Shown in pieces: positions 52,321-59,322 of a stretch of DNA of 64,000 nt. The translations under genes and the position numbers were made by a program. The stretch lies in sequence record MW879344.1, one strand, 5' to 3'. The notes below the pieces were generated by a model. The model worked only from the letters and a program-made list of their open reading frames with translations. It ran no database searches and was not told where the DNA came from. Every line of letters starts with the position of its first letter. The first letter of the stretch is position 1.

Positions 52321-53226
52321 TTAAGCAGTTACTGTTACGACACAAGTATCGGTTTTAGAACCGTCAGTTGTTGTCACAGTAATAGTACTTGTACCAACTG
52401 CTACAGCAGTAATTAAACCACTTGAGCTAACAGTTGCTGTTGCTGGAGTACCAGAAACATAAGTTACTGCCTTATTACTTGCAGTAGATGGGGCAATAGT
52501 TGCAGTTAGTTGTTGGGTTGTAGTTCCAGCTAGGCTTAGAGATACAGTTTTTGGTGCTAGGGTAACTCCAGTTACAGCAGTGGTCACAGTTACTACACAA
52601 GTATCGGTTTTAGAACCGTCTGATGTTGTAGCAGTGATTGTTGCAGAACCATTAGCTACAGCAGTAACCAATCCAGTACTTGAAACAGTAGCCTTTGTTG
52701 TATCATCAGAAGACCATGCAATAGATTTATCGGTTGCATCAGATGGTGCCACCGAAGCATCTAGTTGAGAAGTAGCCCCAACTTTTAGTGCAAGTGTATC
52801 AGGAGTTACAGTTACTCCAGTTACAGCCACAGGGTCTTGACCCTGACCTTGATAGTTAGTTAAGAATACTGCACTACCATCTTGTAGAACAACTTTGTTT
52901 AGAAGCAAGCGAACTGCGAAACCTACAACATCACCAGCAGTATCTTTAATGCTAATGCAGAAAGTTCCATTAGCTAAGTTATCAGCTATATCAGAATTAG
53001 AATCCGCCGGATCTAAATCTACACCGGTTTTATCTACACCAGTAATTTTTACGAAAGGATAAACGGTTGCACCGTCAGCAGAAAGCAAATCAAACATATT
53101 GATTGAACGTTGCTTACTGATGCGTACATTTGTTAATTTAGTACCATCGGCTAGAACAGCAGCATCAACGTTGATGCCATCTACACCGAATGGTGACTTA
53201 TTACGACCAGCAATTGGTTTTCCCAT
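52321..53226 (-). CDS. Virion-associated protein with two Ig-like (Big_2) domains
   Basis: VAVTGVTV.P..L.VG.T.QL.A.V.P..A.DK...W.S; GSKTDTCVVTVT twice; SD AGGAG; late-like GATAAATA/TATAAATG upstream; only credible minus-strand gene. Confidence 0.9.
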   Translation of the reverse strand: MGKPIAGRNKSPFGVDGINVDAAVLADGTKLTNVRISKQRSINMFDLLSADGATVYPFVKITGVDKTGVDLDPADSNSDIADNLANGTFCISIKDTAGDVVGFAVRLLLNKVVLQDGSAVFLTNYQGQGQDPVAVTGVTVTPDTLALKVGATSQLDASVAPSDATDKSIAWSSDDTTKATVSSTGLVTAVANGSATITATTSDGSKTDTCVVTVTTAVTGVTLAPKTVSLSLAGTTTQQLTATIAPSTASNKAVTYVSGTPATATVSSSGLITAVAVGTSTITVTTTDGSKTDTCVVTVTA

Positions 53227-53418
53227 AATTAATCTCCTAGAGAATCATTTATATAATAATATTTATCCAGCCAAGGACTAATATATATTTATTAGGATTT
53301 CCTTGACATAAATGTGAAGATTTGATATACTCTTTTGGTCTTAGAGACAATTAAATCTGAAGTATTTACTGAAAAAAAGTTGAAACATCAGAAAAAAATC
53401 TGTTATAATATAAACATC

Positions 53419-53462
53419 AAAGCGATGTAGCTTTGGCAACAATGACTAAGGGAGTCTTAGAA
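53419..53462 (+). promoter_or_regulatory. Conserved two-hairpin 5' leader, copy 1 (NMNAT gene)
   Basis: AAAGCGATGTAGCTTT-N10-ACTAAGGGAGTCTTAGA; promoter TTGAAA(53380)-18-TATAAT(53404). Confidence 0.7.
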
Positions 53463-54530
53463 ATGAAAAATGAAAAAGTATATGTATATATTGGTCGCTT
53501 CCAAATGGCACATAAAGGCCATGAGGAAACAATTAAACATGCACTAGAAAATGCAGACCGTTTGGTAATTCTTGTTGGTTCGTCTGACCTTGCACGTGAT
53601 CCTAAAAATCCGTTCAGTTTCACAGAACGTCAACAGGTACTGGATGCTATGAGTACTCGTTTAGCACAAGAAGAATGGGCTAAAGGGCGTTCGGTTAAGA
53701 TTAACATCTTACCAATCCACGATTACGTTTATAACAACAGCAAATGGTTAAAAGAAGTACATGAACAGGTTAAATCTGTAACTGTCAGTTCTGATATTAC
53801 TATTACTGGTTGTCAGAAAGAAGCTGACGAAAGTACTTTCTATTTGAACTTCTTTCCACAATGGAAACAGGATTTCATTGAAGAACTTAAAGTTGATGAA
53901 GCAACTATCAACAGTACTGAGATTCGCAATCAATTCTTCAGTACTAAACAAGTTCCAACGATTCTTCCAGAGGAAACTCAAGAGTTCCTAGAGAAGTTCA
54001 TGCACACTAAACCAATGGTGTTTGATAATTTGATTGGTGAATTTAACTTCATTAATCGTTATCGTTCTGAAATGATCGAAAAGTTACCATTTAAAACTAT
54101 CCCATTTATTACTGGTGATGCTTTGGTAATTTGTGCTGGTCATGTTCTATTGGTTAAACGCCGCACATTCCCAGGAAAAGGTCTATATGCACTTCCTGGT
54201 GGATTCTTCGATTCTGAACAAGATGGTGATCAAGTAGATGCCGCGATTCGTGAATTAAAAGAAGAAACCAAAATTGATGTTCCAGTAAAAGTACTTTATG
54301 GTTCTATCCGTGAAAGTATGGAATTCGGTGATAAAAACCGTTCTCTACGCTGGCGTATCATTACTAAGTGTGCGTACATCCAACTTCAGGACAATACTTT
54401 ACCAAAAGTAAAAGGTGCTGATGATGCTGAAAAAGCATTCTGGATGCCACTTGGTGATTTGGTTAACAACCGTGATAAATTCTTTGAAGACCATTTGAGT
54501 ATCATTGATACTTTCTTAGGTATTCTGTAA
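53463..54530 (+). CDS. nadM: Bifunctional NMN adenylyltransferase / ADP-ribose Nudix hydrolase (NadM-Nudix, NatV-like)
   Basis: GRFQMAHKGH, NPF, NSTEIR; Nudix GLYALPGG..AAIRELKEET; FFEDH. Confidence 0.92.
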   Translation: MKNEKVYVYIGRFQMAHKGHEETIKHALENADRLVILVGSSDLARDPKNPFSFTERQQVLDAMSTRLAQEEWAKGRSVKINILPIHDYVYNNSKWLKEVHEQVKSVTVSSDITITGCQKEADESTFYLNFFPQWKQDFIEELKVDEATINSTEIRNQFFSTKQVPTILPEETQEFLEKFMHTKPMVFDNLIGEFNFINRYRSEMIEKLPFKTIPFITGDALVICAGHVLLVKRRTFPGKGLYALPGGFFDSEQDGDQVDAAIRELKEETKIDVPVKVLYGSIRESMEFGDKNRSLRWRIITKCAYIQLQDNTLPKVKGADDAEKAFWMPLGDLVNNRDKFFEDHLSIIDTFLGIL

Positions 54531-54538
54531 GAAATATT

Positions 54539-54561
54539 GGAGTACTTCGGTACTCCATTTT
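54539..54561 (+). terminator. Intrinsic terminator with UUCG loop
   Basis: TGGAGTAC-TTCG-GTACTCCA-TTTT. Confidence 0.75.
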
Positions 54562-54573
54562 AAGTGAGGTCTA

Positions 54574-55095
54574 ATGCTTTACTGTCAACCGAATAGTTTT
54601 TATGATGAAATGATGTATGTATCAGAAAATAATGAGAGATTTTTAAAGAAACTCGCATTGACAGAATACAAAATACCTGATACAGTGCTAAATCTTGAAC
54701 CTATTGGATACCTAATAAAAATAGTTCTTACTGAACCAGATTTTTATGGCAATGATAAAATTATTGCATTACGAACTTTTGGTGTTAATGATTCATTAAC
54801 AATGACACCAAATTGTACTTATATGAGTGTTTATTATGCAATGATTGCAGAAGGTTCATTACTTATATCTAAACCAACCACTTCATATGTTTATATGAAT
54901 GATGAAGGTGAAACGATATATAAGACTTCTGATGAGTATGGTGATGAATATCATTACCGAATAGAAGATATTGCAAAAAGTAAAAGTAATGATATATATG
55001 CATTAGATGCTTATGTATATTATAGCTCTAGGTTATTTCGTCCAGATAATATCATGGCGAAAATACCAACATTTTTATTAAAAAACATGGCATAA
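54574..55095 (+). CDS. Hypothetical protein
   Basis: SD GAGG. Confidence 0.7.
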   Translation: MLYCQPNSFYDEMMYVSENNERFLKKLALTEYKIPDTVLNLEPIGYLIKIVLTEPDFYGNDKIIALRTFGVNDSLTMTPNCTYMSVYYAMIAEGSLLISKPTTSYVYMNDEGETIYKTSDEYGDEYHYRIEDIAKSKSNDIYALDAYVYYSSRLFRPDNIMAKIPTFLLKNMA

Positions 55096-55107
55096 GCCAT
55101 CAACCTG

Positions 55108-55150
55108 AAAGCGTTGTAGCTTTCACACCTATACTAAGGGAGTCTTAGAT
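55108..55150 (+). promoter_or_regulatory. Conserved two-hairpin 5' leader, copy 2 (NAMPT gene)
   Basis: AAAGCGTTGTAGCTTT-N9-ACTAAGGGAGTCTTAGA. Confidence 0.7.
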
Positions 55151-56629
55151 ATGAAAAACTTAAATGTAAACTTTATTCTTAATGTTGATTCTTACAAAAC
55201 TGGTCACGGTTTTATGATGAAAGATGGCGTTGTAGCTCTCGAATCAAACATCATTGCCCGTAAACCATCCAAATTCACTACACATGTTGTGATGATGGGT
55301 ATTCAGTACTACCTACAAGAGTACTTGGATATTGTTATCACTGTAGATGACATTGACGAAGCAGAACATGAAACAAACCAACGTGGTGATGATTTTGATC
55401 GCGGCTTTTGGGAGCATATTGTAGAAGTGCATGGTGGTAAAATTCCATTGCATATTCGTGCTATTCCAGAAGGTACATTGGTTCCTGTTGGTTGTCCTTT
55501 GGTACGTTCTTTCAGTACTGATGAACGTGTAGCAGTTATTGCAAGCTACATTGAAACTCAGTTACAACGTGCAATTTGGTTCCCAACAACTGTTGCAAGT
55601 AATGCTCGTAGCATTAAAGAATTTTTAGCAGATACTATGGAACGTCATGCTGGTCATCGTTTTGTAGATTATCATCTTCATAACTTCGGGGATCGTGGTG
55701 CATCAAGTTTCGAATCAGCAATTCTTGCTGGTATGTCACATGCAACTGTATTCAGTGGTTCTGATTGTTTATCTGCTAACCGTTACATCAAACATTACTA
55801 TAATACTGACAAATCATATTTGACCAGTGTTACTGCAAGTGAACATAGTGCAACTTGTTCTAACTCTGATGCAGACAAACGTGATGACTTCAATATGGCA
55901 GTCAAAATGGTTCGTTTGTGGGAGAAGAAAGTTGACAAGTACATTGCAAATGGTTCTGTTGGTGTACCACCAATTGTTTCAGTAGTAATCGATACTTACG
56001 ATGCGTACCGTTTCGTTCGTGATTATATCGGTACTCGGTTAAAAGCGACAATTGAAGAAATCGGGAAACGTTGCCCTGGTGCTAAACTTGTTATGCGTCC
56101 AGATAGTGGCGACCCAACAACTATGCCAATCGAAATCATCGAACTATTGATGGAAAAATTTGGTAGTACTGTAAATGCACAGGGATTCAAAGTACTTCCA
56201 GCATTTATCGGTGTTATCCAAGGTGATGGCATCAATGAAACCAGTATTCGTCAGATTGTTTCTAATCTAGATGACAAAAAACTTTCTATTGAAAACCTTG
56301 TTTTCGGTATGGGTGGTAAACTTGTTCATCCTGAAGCTGGTCGTGATACTTATTCTTTCGCAATGAAAGGATCTGCACAGCAACTTGAAGATGGTACTTG
56401 GGAAGATTTATTCAAAGACCCAATTACCGATGTTGGTAAACGTTCTCTCCGTGGTCGTGTAACGACTTATGAATGCACCAATACTCACAAAATCATTGCT
56501 GAGCGAATTGAATTACAAGAAGTCAATCCATTTTTGAAAGATATGATGGTTGATATGTACATTGACGGTGTTATCATGAATCTTAGTACTTTTGATGAAG
56601 TACGGGAACGTGCTAATAAAGGTCTATAA
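55151..56629 (+). CDS. nadV: Nicotinamide phosphoribosyltransferase (NadV/NAMPT)
   Basis: DSYKTGH, LHNFGDRG, ASEHS, VIDTYD, RPDSGDP, IQGDG, FGMGG..RDT..FAMK. Confidence 0.93.
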   Translation: MKNLNVNFILNVDSYKTGHGFMMKDGVVALESNIIARKPSKFTTHVVMMGIQYYLQEYLDIVITVDDIDEAEHETNQRGDDFDRGFWEHIVEVHGGKIPLHIRAIPEGTLVPVGCPLVRSFSTDERVAVIASYIETQLQRAIWFPTTVASNARSIKEFLADTMERHAGHRFVDYHLHNFGDRGASSFESAILAGMSHATVFSGSDCLSANRYIKHYYNTDKSYLTSVTASEHSATCSNSDADKRDDFNMAVKMVRLWEKKVDKYIANGSVGVPPIVSVVIDTYDAYRFVRDYIGTRLKATIEEIGKRCPGAKLVMRPDSGDPTTMPIEIIELLMEKFGSTVNAQGFKVLPAFIGVIQGDGINETSIRQIVSNLDDKKLSIENLVFGMGGKLVHPEAGRDTYSFAMKGSAQQLEDGTWEDLFKDPITDVGKRSLRGRVTTYECTNTHKIIAERIELQEVNPFLKDMMVDMYIDGVIMNLSTFDEVRERANKGL

Positions 56630-56721
56630 TATTTTGGGGGCTTTTGCCCCCTTCTTTTTAAGTTAAATAGAGTTATTAAAAGACAAATATAATCAATTTT
56701 ATAATTGAAAATGAGAAAAAT

Positions 56722-56931: not shown

Positions 56932-57378
56932 ATGGCTGGAAAAGGATTTGTGGGTCTATCACTGGATATTGACCAAGCTAAAGAAATTCAAAGAATATTT
57001 AAAATTGCTGGTGTAGATTGCTTGACACCATCAAAATTTCATGTTACTGTTATGTACGATGAAGACGAGCCGGAAATTGATGTTCTTCCGAATGACAAAA
57101 AATATTCTGCAACTATTACTGGCGTTGAACGTCTTGGTAAAGTAGGTTCAAAATATGAAGCTATTGCACTAATATTGGAATCATCTGAAATTAGTCAACG
57201 GCATAAAGAACTAAAAAACGCTGGATTTAAACATAAATTTCCAGATTTTAAATGTCATATGAGTGTACTTTATCAACCATCAGATACCGATTTGGATTTG
57301 ATTGAATTGATATATAAACTTGGGGTATTACCAGAAGAATTGACATTTGGTAATGAACATTTAGGTAATACAAAATAA
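56932..57378 (+). CDS. acb1: 2H phosphoesterase, T4 gp57B/Acb1-like (anti-CBASS candidate)
   Basis: HVTV and HMSV 2H motifs with Acb1-like spacing; ALILES..RH..K..GFKHKFPDF..H.S..Y matches the gp57B pattern. Confidence 0.75.
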   Translation: MAGKGFVGLSLDIDQAKEIQRIFKIAGVDCLTPSKFHVTVMYDEDEPEIDVLPNDKKYSATITGVERLGKVGSKYEAIALILESSEISQRHKELKNAGFKHKFPDFKCHMSVLYQPSDTDLDLIELIYKLGVLPEELTFGNEHLGNTK

Positions 57379-57388
57379 GTAGGTTGTT

Positions 57389-57604
57389 ATGAAAAACGAC
57401 TTGAGCGATAATGAAAAACGACTGTACAGCGGGGCGTGGGTAGATGAACATTCTTGTGCAAATAATAAAGTGACATGTATACGTTGCTTTGGTAGTTACA
57501 TTATACGTGAAGCCCCACGCTCAGTACCAGGAACTGATGGATATTATATTAAAGAACCACAGTGTCCTCATTGTAAATGTCGTTTATATTTTTCACATCT
57601 ATAG
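57389..57604 (+). CDS. Small Zn-ribbon protein
   Basis: CIRC..CPHC. Confidence 0.65.
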   Translation: MKNDLSDNEKRLYSGAWVDEHSCANNKVTCIRCFGSYIIREAPRSVPGTDGYYIKEPQCPHCKCRLYFSHL

Positions 57605-57612
57605 GAATACAA

Positions 57613-58404
57613 ATGGAACTCGAAAGCTTTCTTTTAAATCGTGGACAACCACGCCTAGTATTTGCAACTGGTGCTGGATTATCAAAAGAATCTGGTATTA
57701 ATACTTTCCGTGACGCTGACGATGAAGGCTTGTGGGATCAGTACAATGTGGATGAGATTTGTAATATTGCAACTTTCCATATTAATTATCAAAAAGTACA
57801 TCATTTTTATAATATGCTTCGTGTAAATTTAGCAAATGTTGAACCAAATATTGGTCACCATATAATTGCTGAATACCAACAACTATATGGTCATGACCGT
57901 GTATTACATATTACTGCTAATGTTGATGATTTGGCAGAACGTGCTGGCGGTACAGCTATGCATGTTCATGGTAAACTGACTGAAGTGGTAGAACCATATA
58001 GTACCAATAGTGAGGATTATGAAGTACTGACCGTTGGTTATGAGAATTTCACCCCAACACCAGGAATTATTTCTAAACCAAATATTGTAATGTTTGGAGA
58101 AGGTTACTGGTTCACCGATGGTGTACGTAAACCAATTTATGATGATCTATATCGAGTACTTGATAATTTAACGTCACAAGATACCGTTATTATTATTGGA
58201 TCATCTGATACTGTAATTCCTTGGTCTGTGTATGTTGGTTTAGCTACACCTGCTGAAACACTTAATGTGAATCCAGAAGCCCATGAAAAAGATGATTACT
58301 TTACTTATAATATGTACCAACCAATAAGTAATTCAGTAACAATGATCGATCAGTACGTTCATTCCCGTATGGATCGTCCTGATTATAGCAATGAAGAATA
58401 CTAA
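57613..58404 (+). CDS. Sir2-family NAD-dependent enzyme (no Zn-binding cysteines)
   Basis: GAGLSKESGINTFRD, TANVDDL.ERAG, HVHG, KPNIVMFGE, IGSS. Confidence 0.9.
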   Translation: MELESFLLNRGQPRLVFATGAGLSKESGINTFRDADDEGLWDQYNVDEICNIATFHINYQKVHHFYNMLRVNLANVEPNIGHHIIAEYQQLYGHDRVLHITANVDDLAERAGGTAMHVHGKLTEVVEPYSTNSEDYEVLTVGYENFTPTPGIISKPNIVMFGEGYWFTDGVRKPIYDDLYRVLDNLTSQDTVIIIGSSDTVIPWSVYVGLATPAETLNVNPEAHEKDDYFTYNMYQPISNSVTMIDQYVHSRMDRPDYSNEEY

Positions 58405-58413
58405 GGTTATTTT

Positions 58414-59322
58414 ATGATAGGTTATGAAGAAATTGAATTTGGTACACGCTCAGATCGTTTTGACTGTGTATTCGTGTGGATTTACGCACGTAATTGCACC
58501 CCGTATACTGGCTACCCTTATAATGACATTCCAAATGTTAGTCTAGTACTAACAGAATTGCGATATGACGGTTTATTTGGAGCAGTGGGTGGAGCAGTAG
58601 AAGCAGATGATTTGAATCTAGAAGTTGCAGTACATCGTGAAGCAATGGAAGAAATTGCATATGATTTGCCTATTGAACGTTTAGAACCTCTGGCAACATA
58701 TAAAAATAAAATGAGTGGTTCTCATATTCATAGTTTCTCATTAGAAGTAACTTATGAAGAACTGCTTGAAATACGCAAGAACGCATATAACGGCGAGCAT
58801 TTTAATGCTGAGAATGCAGGTATTAATTTACTTCATATTTGTCGGTACTTAAAAGGTGGAAAAGTCGAATGTGGTTGGAATACAATTCTTGAACAGAATT
58901 TTGTTAGTACTTCTAAATTAGAACTAATGAAACTTGCTCGTACTAAAAATCTTGTCATTAATTATGTTGATGACAGTAAAGCTCATACGGGTTCTTACAA
59001 GATGTTTATTGATGATCTTCGTGATGTTGAACAGTACTATCCAAATGAAGAATTTGTTGTGGTACGTACATATCAAGAAGCTGTTCAATATGTAAAAGAA
59101 CATGGTATGCCATCTTTTGTGTCATTTGATCATGATTTGGGTGATACTGTTAACAAAGATGAAGAAACAGGATATACATTTGCTAAGTACTTAGTGGATT
59201 ATATGATGGATAATCGGATTGCAGTACCTTTCGAATATCATGTTCATAGTGCAAATCCAGTTGGTGCCATGAATATTATGTCCTATTTGGAAAACGCATT
59301 TAAATTTATTCGGAGTTTATAA
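58414..59322 (+). CDS. NUDT16-like Nudix hydrolase fused to a cyclic-phosphate-processing receiver-like domain
   Basis: ELRYDGLFGAVGG..REAMEEI; C-terminal MFIDDLRD..VVRTY..SFDHDLG..TGY..HSANPVG. Confidence 0.75.
   Translation: MIGYEEIEFGTRSDRFDCVFVWIYARNCTPYTGYPYNDIPNVSLVLTELRYDGLFGAVGGAVEADDLNLEVAVHREAMEEIAYDLPIERLEPLATYKNKMSGSHIHSFSLEVTYEELLEIRKNAYNGEHFNAENAGINLLHICRYLKGGKVECGWNTILEQNFVSTSKLELMKLARTKNLVINYVDDSKAHTGSYKMFIDDLRDVEQYYPNEEFVVVRTYQEAVQYVKEHGMPSFVSFDHDLGDTVNKDEETGYTFAKYLVDYMMDNRIAVPFEYHVHSANPVGAMNIMSYLENAFKFIRSL

Follow-up and report, generated by a model that had tools for sequence, protein, structure and literature searches.

How does a phage adjust two genes of one pathway when other sequence lies between them? 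The question is raised by the stretch of DNA analysed here, 64,000 nucleotides (nt) of sequence record MW879344.1 (one strand, 5' to 3'; hereafter the window), which carries two genes for the salvage of nicotinamide adenine dinucleotide (NAD). The first, natV (53463..54530, + strand), encodes a bifunctional nicotinamide mononucleotide (NMN) adenylyltransferase/Nudix ADP-ribose pyrophosphatase, and the second, nadV (55151..56629, + strand), a nicotinamide phosphoribosyltransferase (NAMPT). Directly before each of them stands almost the same leader, a pair of small hairpins of which the second holds the Shine-Dalgarno (SD) sequence. Is this leader a sensor of a metabolite, a convenient expression signal that travelled with the genes, or a binding site through which both enzymes are adjusted together? 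The two copies are best understood as one structured mRNA element that belongs to natV and nadV alone, and we consider it likely, with a good share of doubt, that this element is a translational operator bound by a trans-acting factor.

A two-hairpin leader restricted to natV and nadV

The identity of the two genes is not in question. NatV matches the Pfam families PF01467 (CTP_transf_like) and PF00293 (NUDIX), in agreement with the annotation of relatives, and NadV matches PF18127 (NAMPT_N) and PF04095 (NAPRTase). A NAMPT-type NadV together with an NMNAT(-Nudix) NatV is the gene pair of the route from nicotinamide to NAD+ that phage papers name NARP2.

The leaders are built as follows. Hairpin 1 of natV (53418..53435, + strand) has the stem CAAAGC/GCUUUG and the loop GAUGUA, and that of nadV (55107..55124, + strand) has the stem GAAAGC/GCUUUC and the loop GUUGUA; both are supported by sequence, folding and covariation. 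Hairpin 2, supported by sequence and folding, reads CUAAG-GGAGU-CUUAG in both cases (53446..53460 and 55134..55148, + strand), with the SD sequence GGAG in its loop (53451-53454 and 55139-55142). At the level of the DNA, AAAGCG(A/T)TGTAGCTTT occurs at 53419-53434 and 55108-55123, and ACTAAGGGAGTCTTAGA at 53445-53461 and 55133-55149, each copy of the latter followed by ATGAAAAA and then by the ATG. No further match exists in the window, even when 2 mismatches are allowed in the first motif (0.13 expected by chance) or 3 in the second. The minimum-energy RNA fold consists of the two hairpins for both leaders of the window, and the same is true of four relatives. The initial annotation, which had placed both hairpins before the NMNAT-Nudix and NAMPT genes and nowhere else in the window, thus holds for their positions and their rarity. 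Its drawing of hairpin 1 was right as to place and has to be amended as to extent: the stem comprises 6 base pairs (bp), C/G-AAAGC with GCTTT-G/C, and its outermost pair is compensatory between the copies, being C-G before natV and G-C before nadV.

Over region 53300-56700 the window agrees letter for letter with Erwinia phage pEa_SNUABM_49 and to 99.6% with Serratia phage BF, jumbo phages of 355-358 kb in the genus Eneladusvirus. Related genera among these Rak2-like phages are Mimasvirus (GAP32, CBB, XbC2), Asteriusvirus (EJP2) and Alcyoneusvirus (K64-1, RaK2). When four complete records of 355-378 kb (pEa47, fHe-Yen9-04, GAP32 and CBB) were scanned for both motifs, each motif was found exactly twice per genome, only before natV and nadV. 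The near-identical pEa47 genome (pEa_SNUABM_47, assembled from 18 pieces) was also searched for any hairpin with a similar loop. That genome-wide scan gave no other convincing copy of the leader, and only the hairpins of natV and nadV were followed by an SD hairpin and an ATG. In neither kind of scan, therefore, does the motif stand before unrelated genes.

The restriction to these two genes persists where the locus is arranged differently. In Vibrio phage 2.275.O (NadV identity 55%) a distance of 5.3 kb, filled by nine genes, separates natV from nadV; the exact 15-mer of hairpin 2 lies just before both ATGs, with no third copy in 349 kb. K64-1 lacks the open reading frame (ORF173) that separates natV and nadV in the window, and keeps both leaders. 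The natV of XaC1 and the nadV of Vibrio phage 2.275.O have a different hairpin at the position of hairpin 1.

Conservation of the two hairpins follows different rules. Hairpin 1 was studied in 27 leaders from Rak2-like jumbo phages (an earlier run had used a 22-sequence version of this set). Both partners change in five of its six core pairs, all six are paired in 89-100% of cells, and four are paired in every sequence. The covariation score was reached by none of 500 shuffles, and sliding the partner columns of the alignment abolishes the pairing. The stems are correspondingly diverse: besides CAAAGC/GCUUUG and GAAAGC/GCUUUC they include CAAGGU/GCCUUG, CCAAC/GUUGG, AGAAC/GUUCU, GACAGC/GCUGUC, GCCGCU/GGCGGU, AGAGAGU/GCUCUCU and GUAGC/GCUAC. 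What is kept in these phages is the top of the hairpin, with a closing pair that is only C-G or U-G and a loop of the form G-N-(N)-G-N-A. Because the U-G wobbles pair on the coding strand only, and because the sequence of the arms is not conserved, this is the signature of RNA; on the aligned sequences, hairpin 1 is a conserved RNA helix and not a DNA operator. Both halves of the search that the initial annotation had proposed among natV and nadV homologues, for the motif and for its covariation, thus gave a positive result.

An oddity of the natV leaders in the Munch-like group may be recorded here. Just 5' of hairpin 1 and directly after the -10 box they carry a second, unpaired (G)AUGUAG, which repeats the loop together with its closing G (L043:740-755, L014:1738-1750, L016:1742-1750 and L088:2244-2254).

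In hairpin 2 it is the sequence itself that is kept. All examined genomes of Eneladusvirus and Mimasvirus, and XaC1 as well, have the 15-mer CUAAGGGAGUCUUAG without any change before both genes, and it stays the same where the proteins share only 35-55% identity. K64-1 has the exact 15-mer before nadV only; its natV has CUUAG-GGAGUA-CUAAG, in which a pair is flipped and the helix preserved. Outside the window (93199-93227), pEa_SNUABM_47 has another gene start whose SD sequence lies in the loop of a similar hairpin, GACUAAC-GGAG-UUAGGC (-7.3 kcal/mol); no other of the 286 scanned gene starts is as stable, and this one comes without a hairpin 1.

A wider family in phages and bacteria

Does the leader exist beyond the Rak2-like phages? 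A scan of IMG/VR for the exact 15-mer retrieved one unrelated phage of 172.6 kb (hereafter G002), in which it precedes a natV whose product is only 35% identical. Both leaders of this phage have the hairpin 1 loop GG-AUAGA-CC, and its natV leader is a hybrid, a G-AUAGA-C hairpin 1 combined with the exact hairpin 2 15-mer of the window.

This phage opens the way to a larger group. The wider-family sample consisted of 79 viral loci whose NadV is a distant relative, at 30-41% identity; start codons in the metagenomic loci were chosen by a simple rule, and a few were wrong, among them those of L143 and L152, which were corrected. In most of these loci the leaders of natV and nadV follow the same plan: a variable stem topped by G-AUAGA-C, a G-poor spacer, and an SD hairpin with A-GGA(G/U)(U/C)-U in its loop and a 3' arm that touches the AUG. 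The spacer, of about 9-20 nt, is rich in A, U and C and conserved neither in length nor in sequence, and the leader often follows directly on the gene's own promoter. The same plan is found before chromosomal nadM-Nudix and nadV genes of Thiothrix, Thiofilum, Thiolinea and Teredinibacter, and in metagenome-assembled genomes (MAGs) of Hahellaceae, Alteromonadaceae and Campylobacterota; Shinella, Pararhizobium and their relatives lack it.

In a set of 45 phage and bacterial leaders, all six pairs of hairpin 1 and four pairs of hairpin 2 covary, and 89% of cells are paired, vs 54% in shuffles. A covariance model built from this set (R1, with rough E-values) gave 70 matches at E up to 1 in 72 viral loci. 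Nearly all of them are on the coding strand and end at natV, at nadV or at a small ORF heading a natV/nadV operon. On whole genomes R1 found natV and nadV leaders only, namely two in Thiothrix lacustris, two in phage G002 and one each in two more bacterial genomes. The best match in the whole pEa47 genome (24 bits, E 0.09) is antisense inside a coding sequence and was set aside as chance.

The small ORFs deserve a word of their own. In some phage contigs the leader stands before an ORF of 85-123 codons just upstream of natV or nadV (L135:2361-2681, L139:6290-6661, L244:1215-1481 and L092:1789-2046), and those of L135 and L139 overlap the natV start. There the gene under the leader's control seems to be the one that heads a small operon.

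How do the leaders of the window relate to this family? They lie directly 5' of natV and nadV on the coding strand, as do those of the G-AUAGA-C class; they have a covarying hairpin 1 stem within the class range of 5-9 bp, and a hairpin 2 with the SD sequence in its loop and the 3' arm beside the AUG. Their hairpin 1 loops, C-GAUGUA-G and C-GUUGUA-G, are not AUAGA closed by G-C, so that they are a variant and not canonical members; the R1 score, too, marks the Rak2-like form as a divergent variant of the family. The two forms are tied together by the identity of the two genes, by position and architecture, by the G002 hybrid and by the NadV tree. In that tree (FastTree, midpoint root) the Rak2-like clade (support 98) is sister, with support 100, to L091 and L092, whose nadV has the classical leader; the motif labels on it were set automatically, are crude and miss members.

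Among cultured phages outside the Rak2-like group, R1 found no match in Milchi, ACP17 and VspSw_1, and a weak one at nadV of RsoM2USA; SD hairpins precede nadV even in cases without hairpin 1. It likewise found none in mtp5, in Aeromonas phage 25, and in skuden, W22, ICP1 and PAK_P2, phages that have a PRPS-like and a NadV-like gene, a type that we take to be NARP1.

A likeness of hairpin 1 to ribosomal RNA was also noted. Its loops resemble helix 24 of 16S rRNA in the same sense and are not complementary to it: GG-AUAGA-CC is close to GG-AUUAGAUAC-CC of the 16S 790 loop (the 16S string was verified in a Thiothrix genome), and the 16S letters that come next after the 790 loop are those of the minor loop class GGUAGUC. 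Such loops were noted in the natV leaders of L104, L106, L108 and L109 and in a bacterial genome (G006, contig 1, 435363-435386). The likeness may be chance or rRNA mimicry.

How might the leader act?

With the SD sequence in hairpin 2 and the AUG immediately after it, the leader is placed to act on the initiation of translation. We infer that it does so through a factor acting in trans. Such a factor would recognise the loop of hairpin 1, possibly also the similar loop of hairpin 2, and would determine the ease with which hairpin 2 gives way to the ribosome; in this manner both enzymes would be adjusted together. Judged from the alignments, the conserved loop of hairpin 1 would be the obvious recognition point.

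What could the factor be? No third conserved protein was found in the loci; what look like clusters of small ORFs are for the most part, to judge by position, antisense to nadV or natV and lie within them. Loop types are common to the two leaders of a genome: G-N-N-GUA in both leaders of the Rak2-like phages, AUAGA in both leaders of at least 8 distinct genomes, GGGGU in both of L119 and GGAGU in both of L122. The lack of a third shared protein, the two-gene regulon and the shared loop types together speak for a protein partner that moves along with the genes. The best candidate would then be one of the two enzymes, NatV or NadV, under autogenous control. Pathway enzymes or their domains are known as regulators, as PyrR, NadR and NrtR illustrate. 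PyrR, a protein of the phosphoribosyltransferase fold that binds leader hairpins, is a precedent for NadV or NatV as a trans-acting factor, and differs in acting by transcription attenuation on a different hairpin. In NadR and NrtR an NMNAT and a Nudix domain, respectively, regulate NAD genes (PMC2330246); these proteins bind DNA through added helix-turn-helix domains, and natV of the window has no such domain.

The translational operators of phages offer a further comparison. Those of T4 gp43 and RegA and the coat-protein hairpins of MS2 and PP7 are, like the present leader, short hairpins at or just 5' of the ribosome-binding site; they are recognised by the loop, and binding blocks initiation, which gives autogenous or coordinated control. 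The leader is unlike them in having two hairpins, in serving two metabolic genes and in occurring also in bacterial chromosomes. A Pfam search of three genomes found no RegA homologue, a weak negative since the control was silent as well.

The initial annotation had proposed a pathway-specific cis-regulatory RNA for coordinated translation. This general idea is strongly supported by the covariation of hairpin 1, the restriction to natV and nadV, the retention of both leaders in genes 5.3 kb apart and the wider family. The three specific mechanisms that it offered (a metabolite-sensing switch, autoregulation by the NMNAT-Nudix protein and a site for a GGAG endonuclease) have fared unequally; autoregulation, by NatV or by NadV, is on our inference the leading one.

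Several observations weigh against an operator with a protein partner, or against the place of the window's leaders in the family. Hairpin 2 is only moderately stable (ranks 32 and 41 among the 286 phage gene starts) and cannot block ribosomes strongly by itself, so something more would be needed for control. The two leaders also differ in their position on the transcript. By consensus match alone, natV is preceded by two tandem sigma-70-like promoters (53303-53409), each with 11/12 consensus positions: an upstream one, TTGACA-17-TATACT (53303..53331, + strand), and a proximal one, TTGAAA-18-TATAAT with a TG before the -10 box (53380..53409, + strand). A consensus scan found no comparable promoter directly 5' of nadV; its leader is therefore probably internal to a longer transcript, unlike that of natV. 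A search for RNA-sequencing runs that contain the locus found none. On the window itself R1 scored the nadV leader at 14.8 bits (E about 6) and did not list the natV leader. As this result is not significant, the membership of the window leaders in the family rests on context and architecture. The loop variants shared within genomes could come from gene conversion or leader duplication. Finally, NatV and NadV proteins with the motif are no longer than those without it, and hence give no sign of an added RNA-binding domain.

The main rival to a protein-bound operator is a small riboswitch, in which the two hairpins would themselves bind a metabolite of the pathway (nicotinamide, NMN, ADP-ribose, phosphoribosyl pyrophosphate or NAD+) and so alter access to the SD sequence. 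Such a metabolite switch is possible and less favoured; we hold it to be unlikely, if still worth serious attention. It would account well for a motif shared by distant phages and by at least two bacterial phyla without a common regulator gene, for a regulon confined to two enzymes of one pathway, and for the overlap of hairpin 2 with the SD sequence, which is common in translational riboswitches. The conserved nucleotides, however, sit only in two 5-nt terminal loops, one of which is the SD sequence itself, and the spacer is free in length and sequence. A comparison of the aligned leaders by eye only brought out no conserved complementarity, of the loop-loop or of the pseudoknot kind, that would link hairpin 1 to hairpin 2 or to the spacer. 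Moreover, the loop of hairpin 1 depends on the lineage (AUAGA, GUAGU, GGGGU, GAUGUA, GCGAA), which is unexpected of a pocket for a universal metabolite.

Comparison with known riboswitches points the same way. Rfam 15 gave no matching family over 52800-55600 at E up to 10 or, with the gathering threshold, in 13 related loci. The two scans brought up chance snoRNA rows and tRNAs only, and NAD+-I, NAD+-II and guanidine-II were all without a match. Guanidine-II (mini-ykkC) has the same general design, with two small hairpins, a variable linker, conserved nucleotides in the terminal loops only and a second hairpin that overlaps the SD sequence. The loops of the present leader, GAUGUA/GUUGUA and GGAGU, are not ACGR, not alike and not self-complementary, and its genes serve NAD salvage, those of guanidine-II guanidine detoxification. 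NAD+-I (the nadA motif) and NAD+-II (the pnuC motif) are, like the leader, cis-acting leader RNAs before NAD-related genes, and NAD+-II also sequesters the SD sequence. They differ in their genes (nadA and pnuC vs natV and nadV) and taxa, and the leader has neither an internal-loop pocket nor a pseudoknot. That the leader reads an NAD+ breakdown product such as nicotinamide or ADP-ribose, either as a new miniature two-hairpin riboswitch class or as an enzyme-bound RNA sensor, is a doubtful proposition.

Could the leader simply be a constitutive cassette? Hairpin 1 would then shield the 5' end of the mRNA from decay, hairpin 2 would present a strong SD sequence, and the element would have travelled with the genes. 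The natV copy suits this role: the predicted transcript start of the proximal promoter lies 1-3 nt 5' of hairpin 1, the usual site of stabilising 5' hairpins, and relatives keep the -35/-10 layout with the -10 box 7-9 nt 5' of hairpin 1. The different hairpin at this place in XaC1 natV and Vibrio 2.275.O nadV, and the SD hairpins before nadV without any hairpin 1, can be counted in its favour too. A stabiliser, however, requires a stem and not a conserved loop, and here it is the loop that is conserved while the stems vary freely. Nor is the element used for any other gene in 350-kb genomes with hundreds of genes; no transcript start is predicted at the nadV copy; and the 15-mer of hairpin 2 is identical between genomes whose proteins have diverged to 35-55% identity. 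A mere cassette is improbable.

Still less can be said for a timing site at which a GGAG-specific endoribonuclease like T4 RegB would shut off both mRNAs after the early phase. The GGAG is indeed unpaired in the loop of hairpin 2, exposed as such a site should be, and an unpaired GGAG in a hairpin loop resembles the preferred substrates of RegB in T4. A search of three Rak2-like genomes gave no match to REGB_T4 (PF10715), again a weak negative because the control genomes were silent too. Bacteria, Thiothrix among them, have the same leader before nadM and nadV in their chromosomes, and in many members the loop is GGAUU or GGAAC, without GGAG. This part of the initial annotation found no support, and we regard it as very improbable.

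Least credible of all is a DNA operator, to which a dimeric repressor (NrtR, NadR or a phage protein) would bind. In its favour, the two hairpins form inverted repeats a short way 3' of a promoter, and NAD genes are often controlled by NrtR or NadR (PMC2330246). Against it, the arms vary freely with pairing kept, the U-G wobbles are pairs in one of the two strands alone, the centre that is conserved lacks symmetry, and neither the NrtR core GT-N7-AC of a 21-bp palindrome nor the NadR box TGTTTA-N6-TAAACA (PMC2330246) is present in the leaders.

The surrounding locus and the meaning of the leader

The remaining features of the locus are soon described. As the initial annotation had it, a terminator and an unrelated gene separate natV from nadV: a terminator-like hairpin with a UUCG loop, followed by UUUUAA, lies at 54538..54557 (+ strand), and ORF173, a conserved hypothetical gene of 173 codons, at 54574..55095 (+ strand). 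A second terminator-like hairpin follows nadV (56636..56651, + strand). Rapidly evolving (relatives share 22-67% identity), ORF173 falls into no Pfam family, and its only sequence match is an unnamed PHROG. Its AlphaFold model has a mean confidence (pLDDT) of 85, and the Foldseek matches, ITPase/Maf-like, are weak (E 6e-3, TM score about 0.3); they include two nucleotide-binding defence-related entries, KomBC and Lockin. As a regulator of the pair it was considered and dropped, for it is absent between natV and nadV in K64-1, where both leaders persist. It is probably not part of the control element.

On the 3' side of nadV (56932-59322) lies a run of likely counter-defence and NAD-related genes. 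These encode an Acb1-like 2H phosphoesterase (56932-57378), a phage zinc-binding protein (57389-57604), a Sir2-family protein (57577-58404) and a Nudt16-like Nudix protein fused to a cyclic-phosphate receiver domain (58414-59322).

Has the leader been seen before? NARP2, the pathway of NadV and NatV, is that of the two leader-bearing genes, and the titles and abstracts of the NARP2 papers give no sign of a shared leader RNA. Within the accessible literature, which includes the NrtR surveys and those of the Breaker laboratory and leaves most subscription journals outside, neither a description of a nadV or natV leader RNA nor a paper addressing the control of these genes was found. The two-hairpin leader is thus apparently undescribed.

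What, then, does it mean? On the practical side, the motif reliably marks the starts of natV and nadV in metagenomic phage contigs, and an RNA of about 50 nt with clear covariation is well suited to binding, reporter and structure studies. Should the leader sense a metabolite or an enzyme, it would be a new class of regulatory RNA for NAD metabolism and a compact sensor part.

For the biology of these phages the stakes are set by the pathway itself. NadV and NatV rebuild NAD+ and so let phages overcome defence systems that deplete it. If a sensor of NAD+ breakdown were to prove true, phages and some bacteria would start to rebuild NAD+ exactly when NAD+-depleting immunity fires. More generally, that phages and bacteria have a conserved, gene-specific leader in common speaks for a post-transcriptional control dedicated to the NAD salvage pathway.

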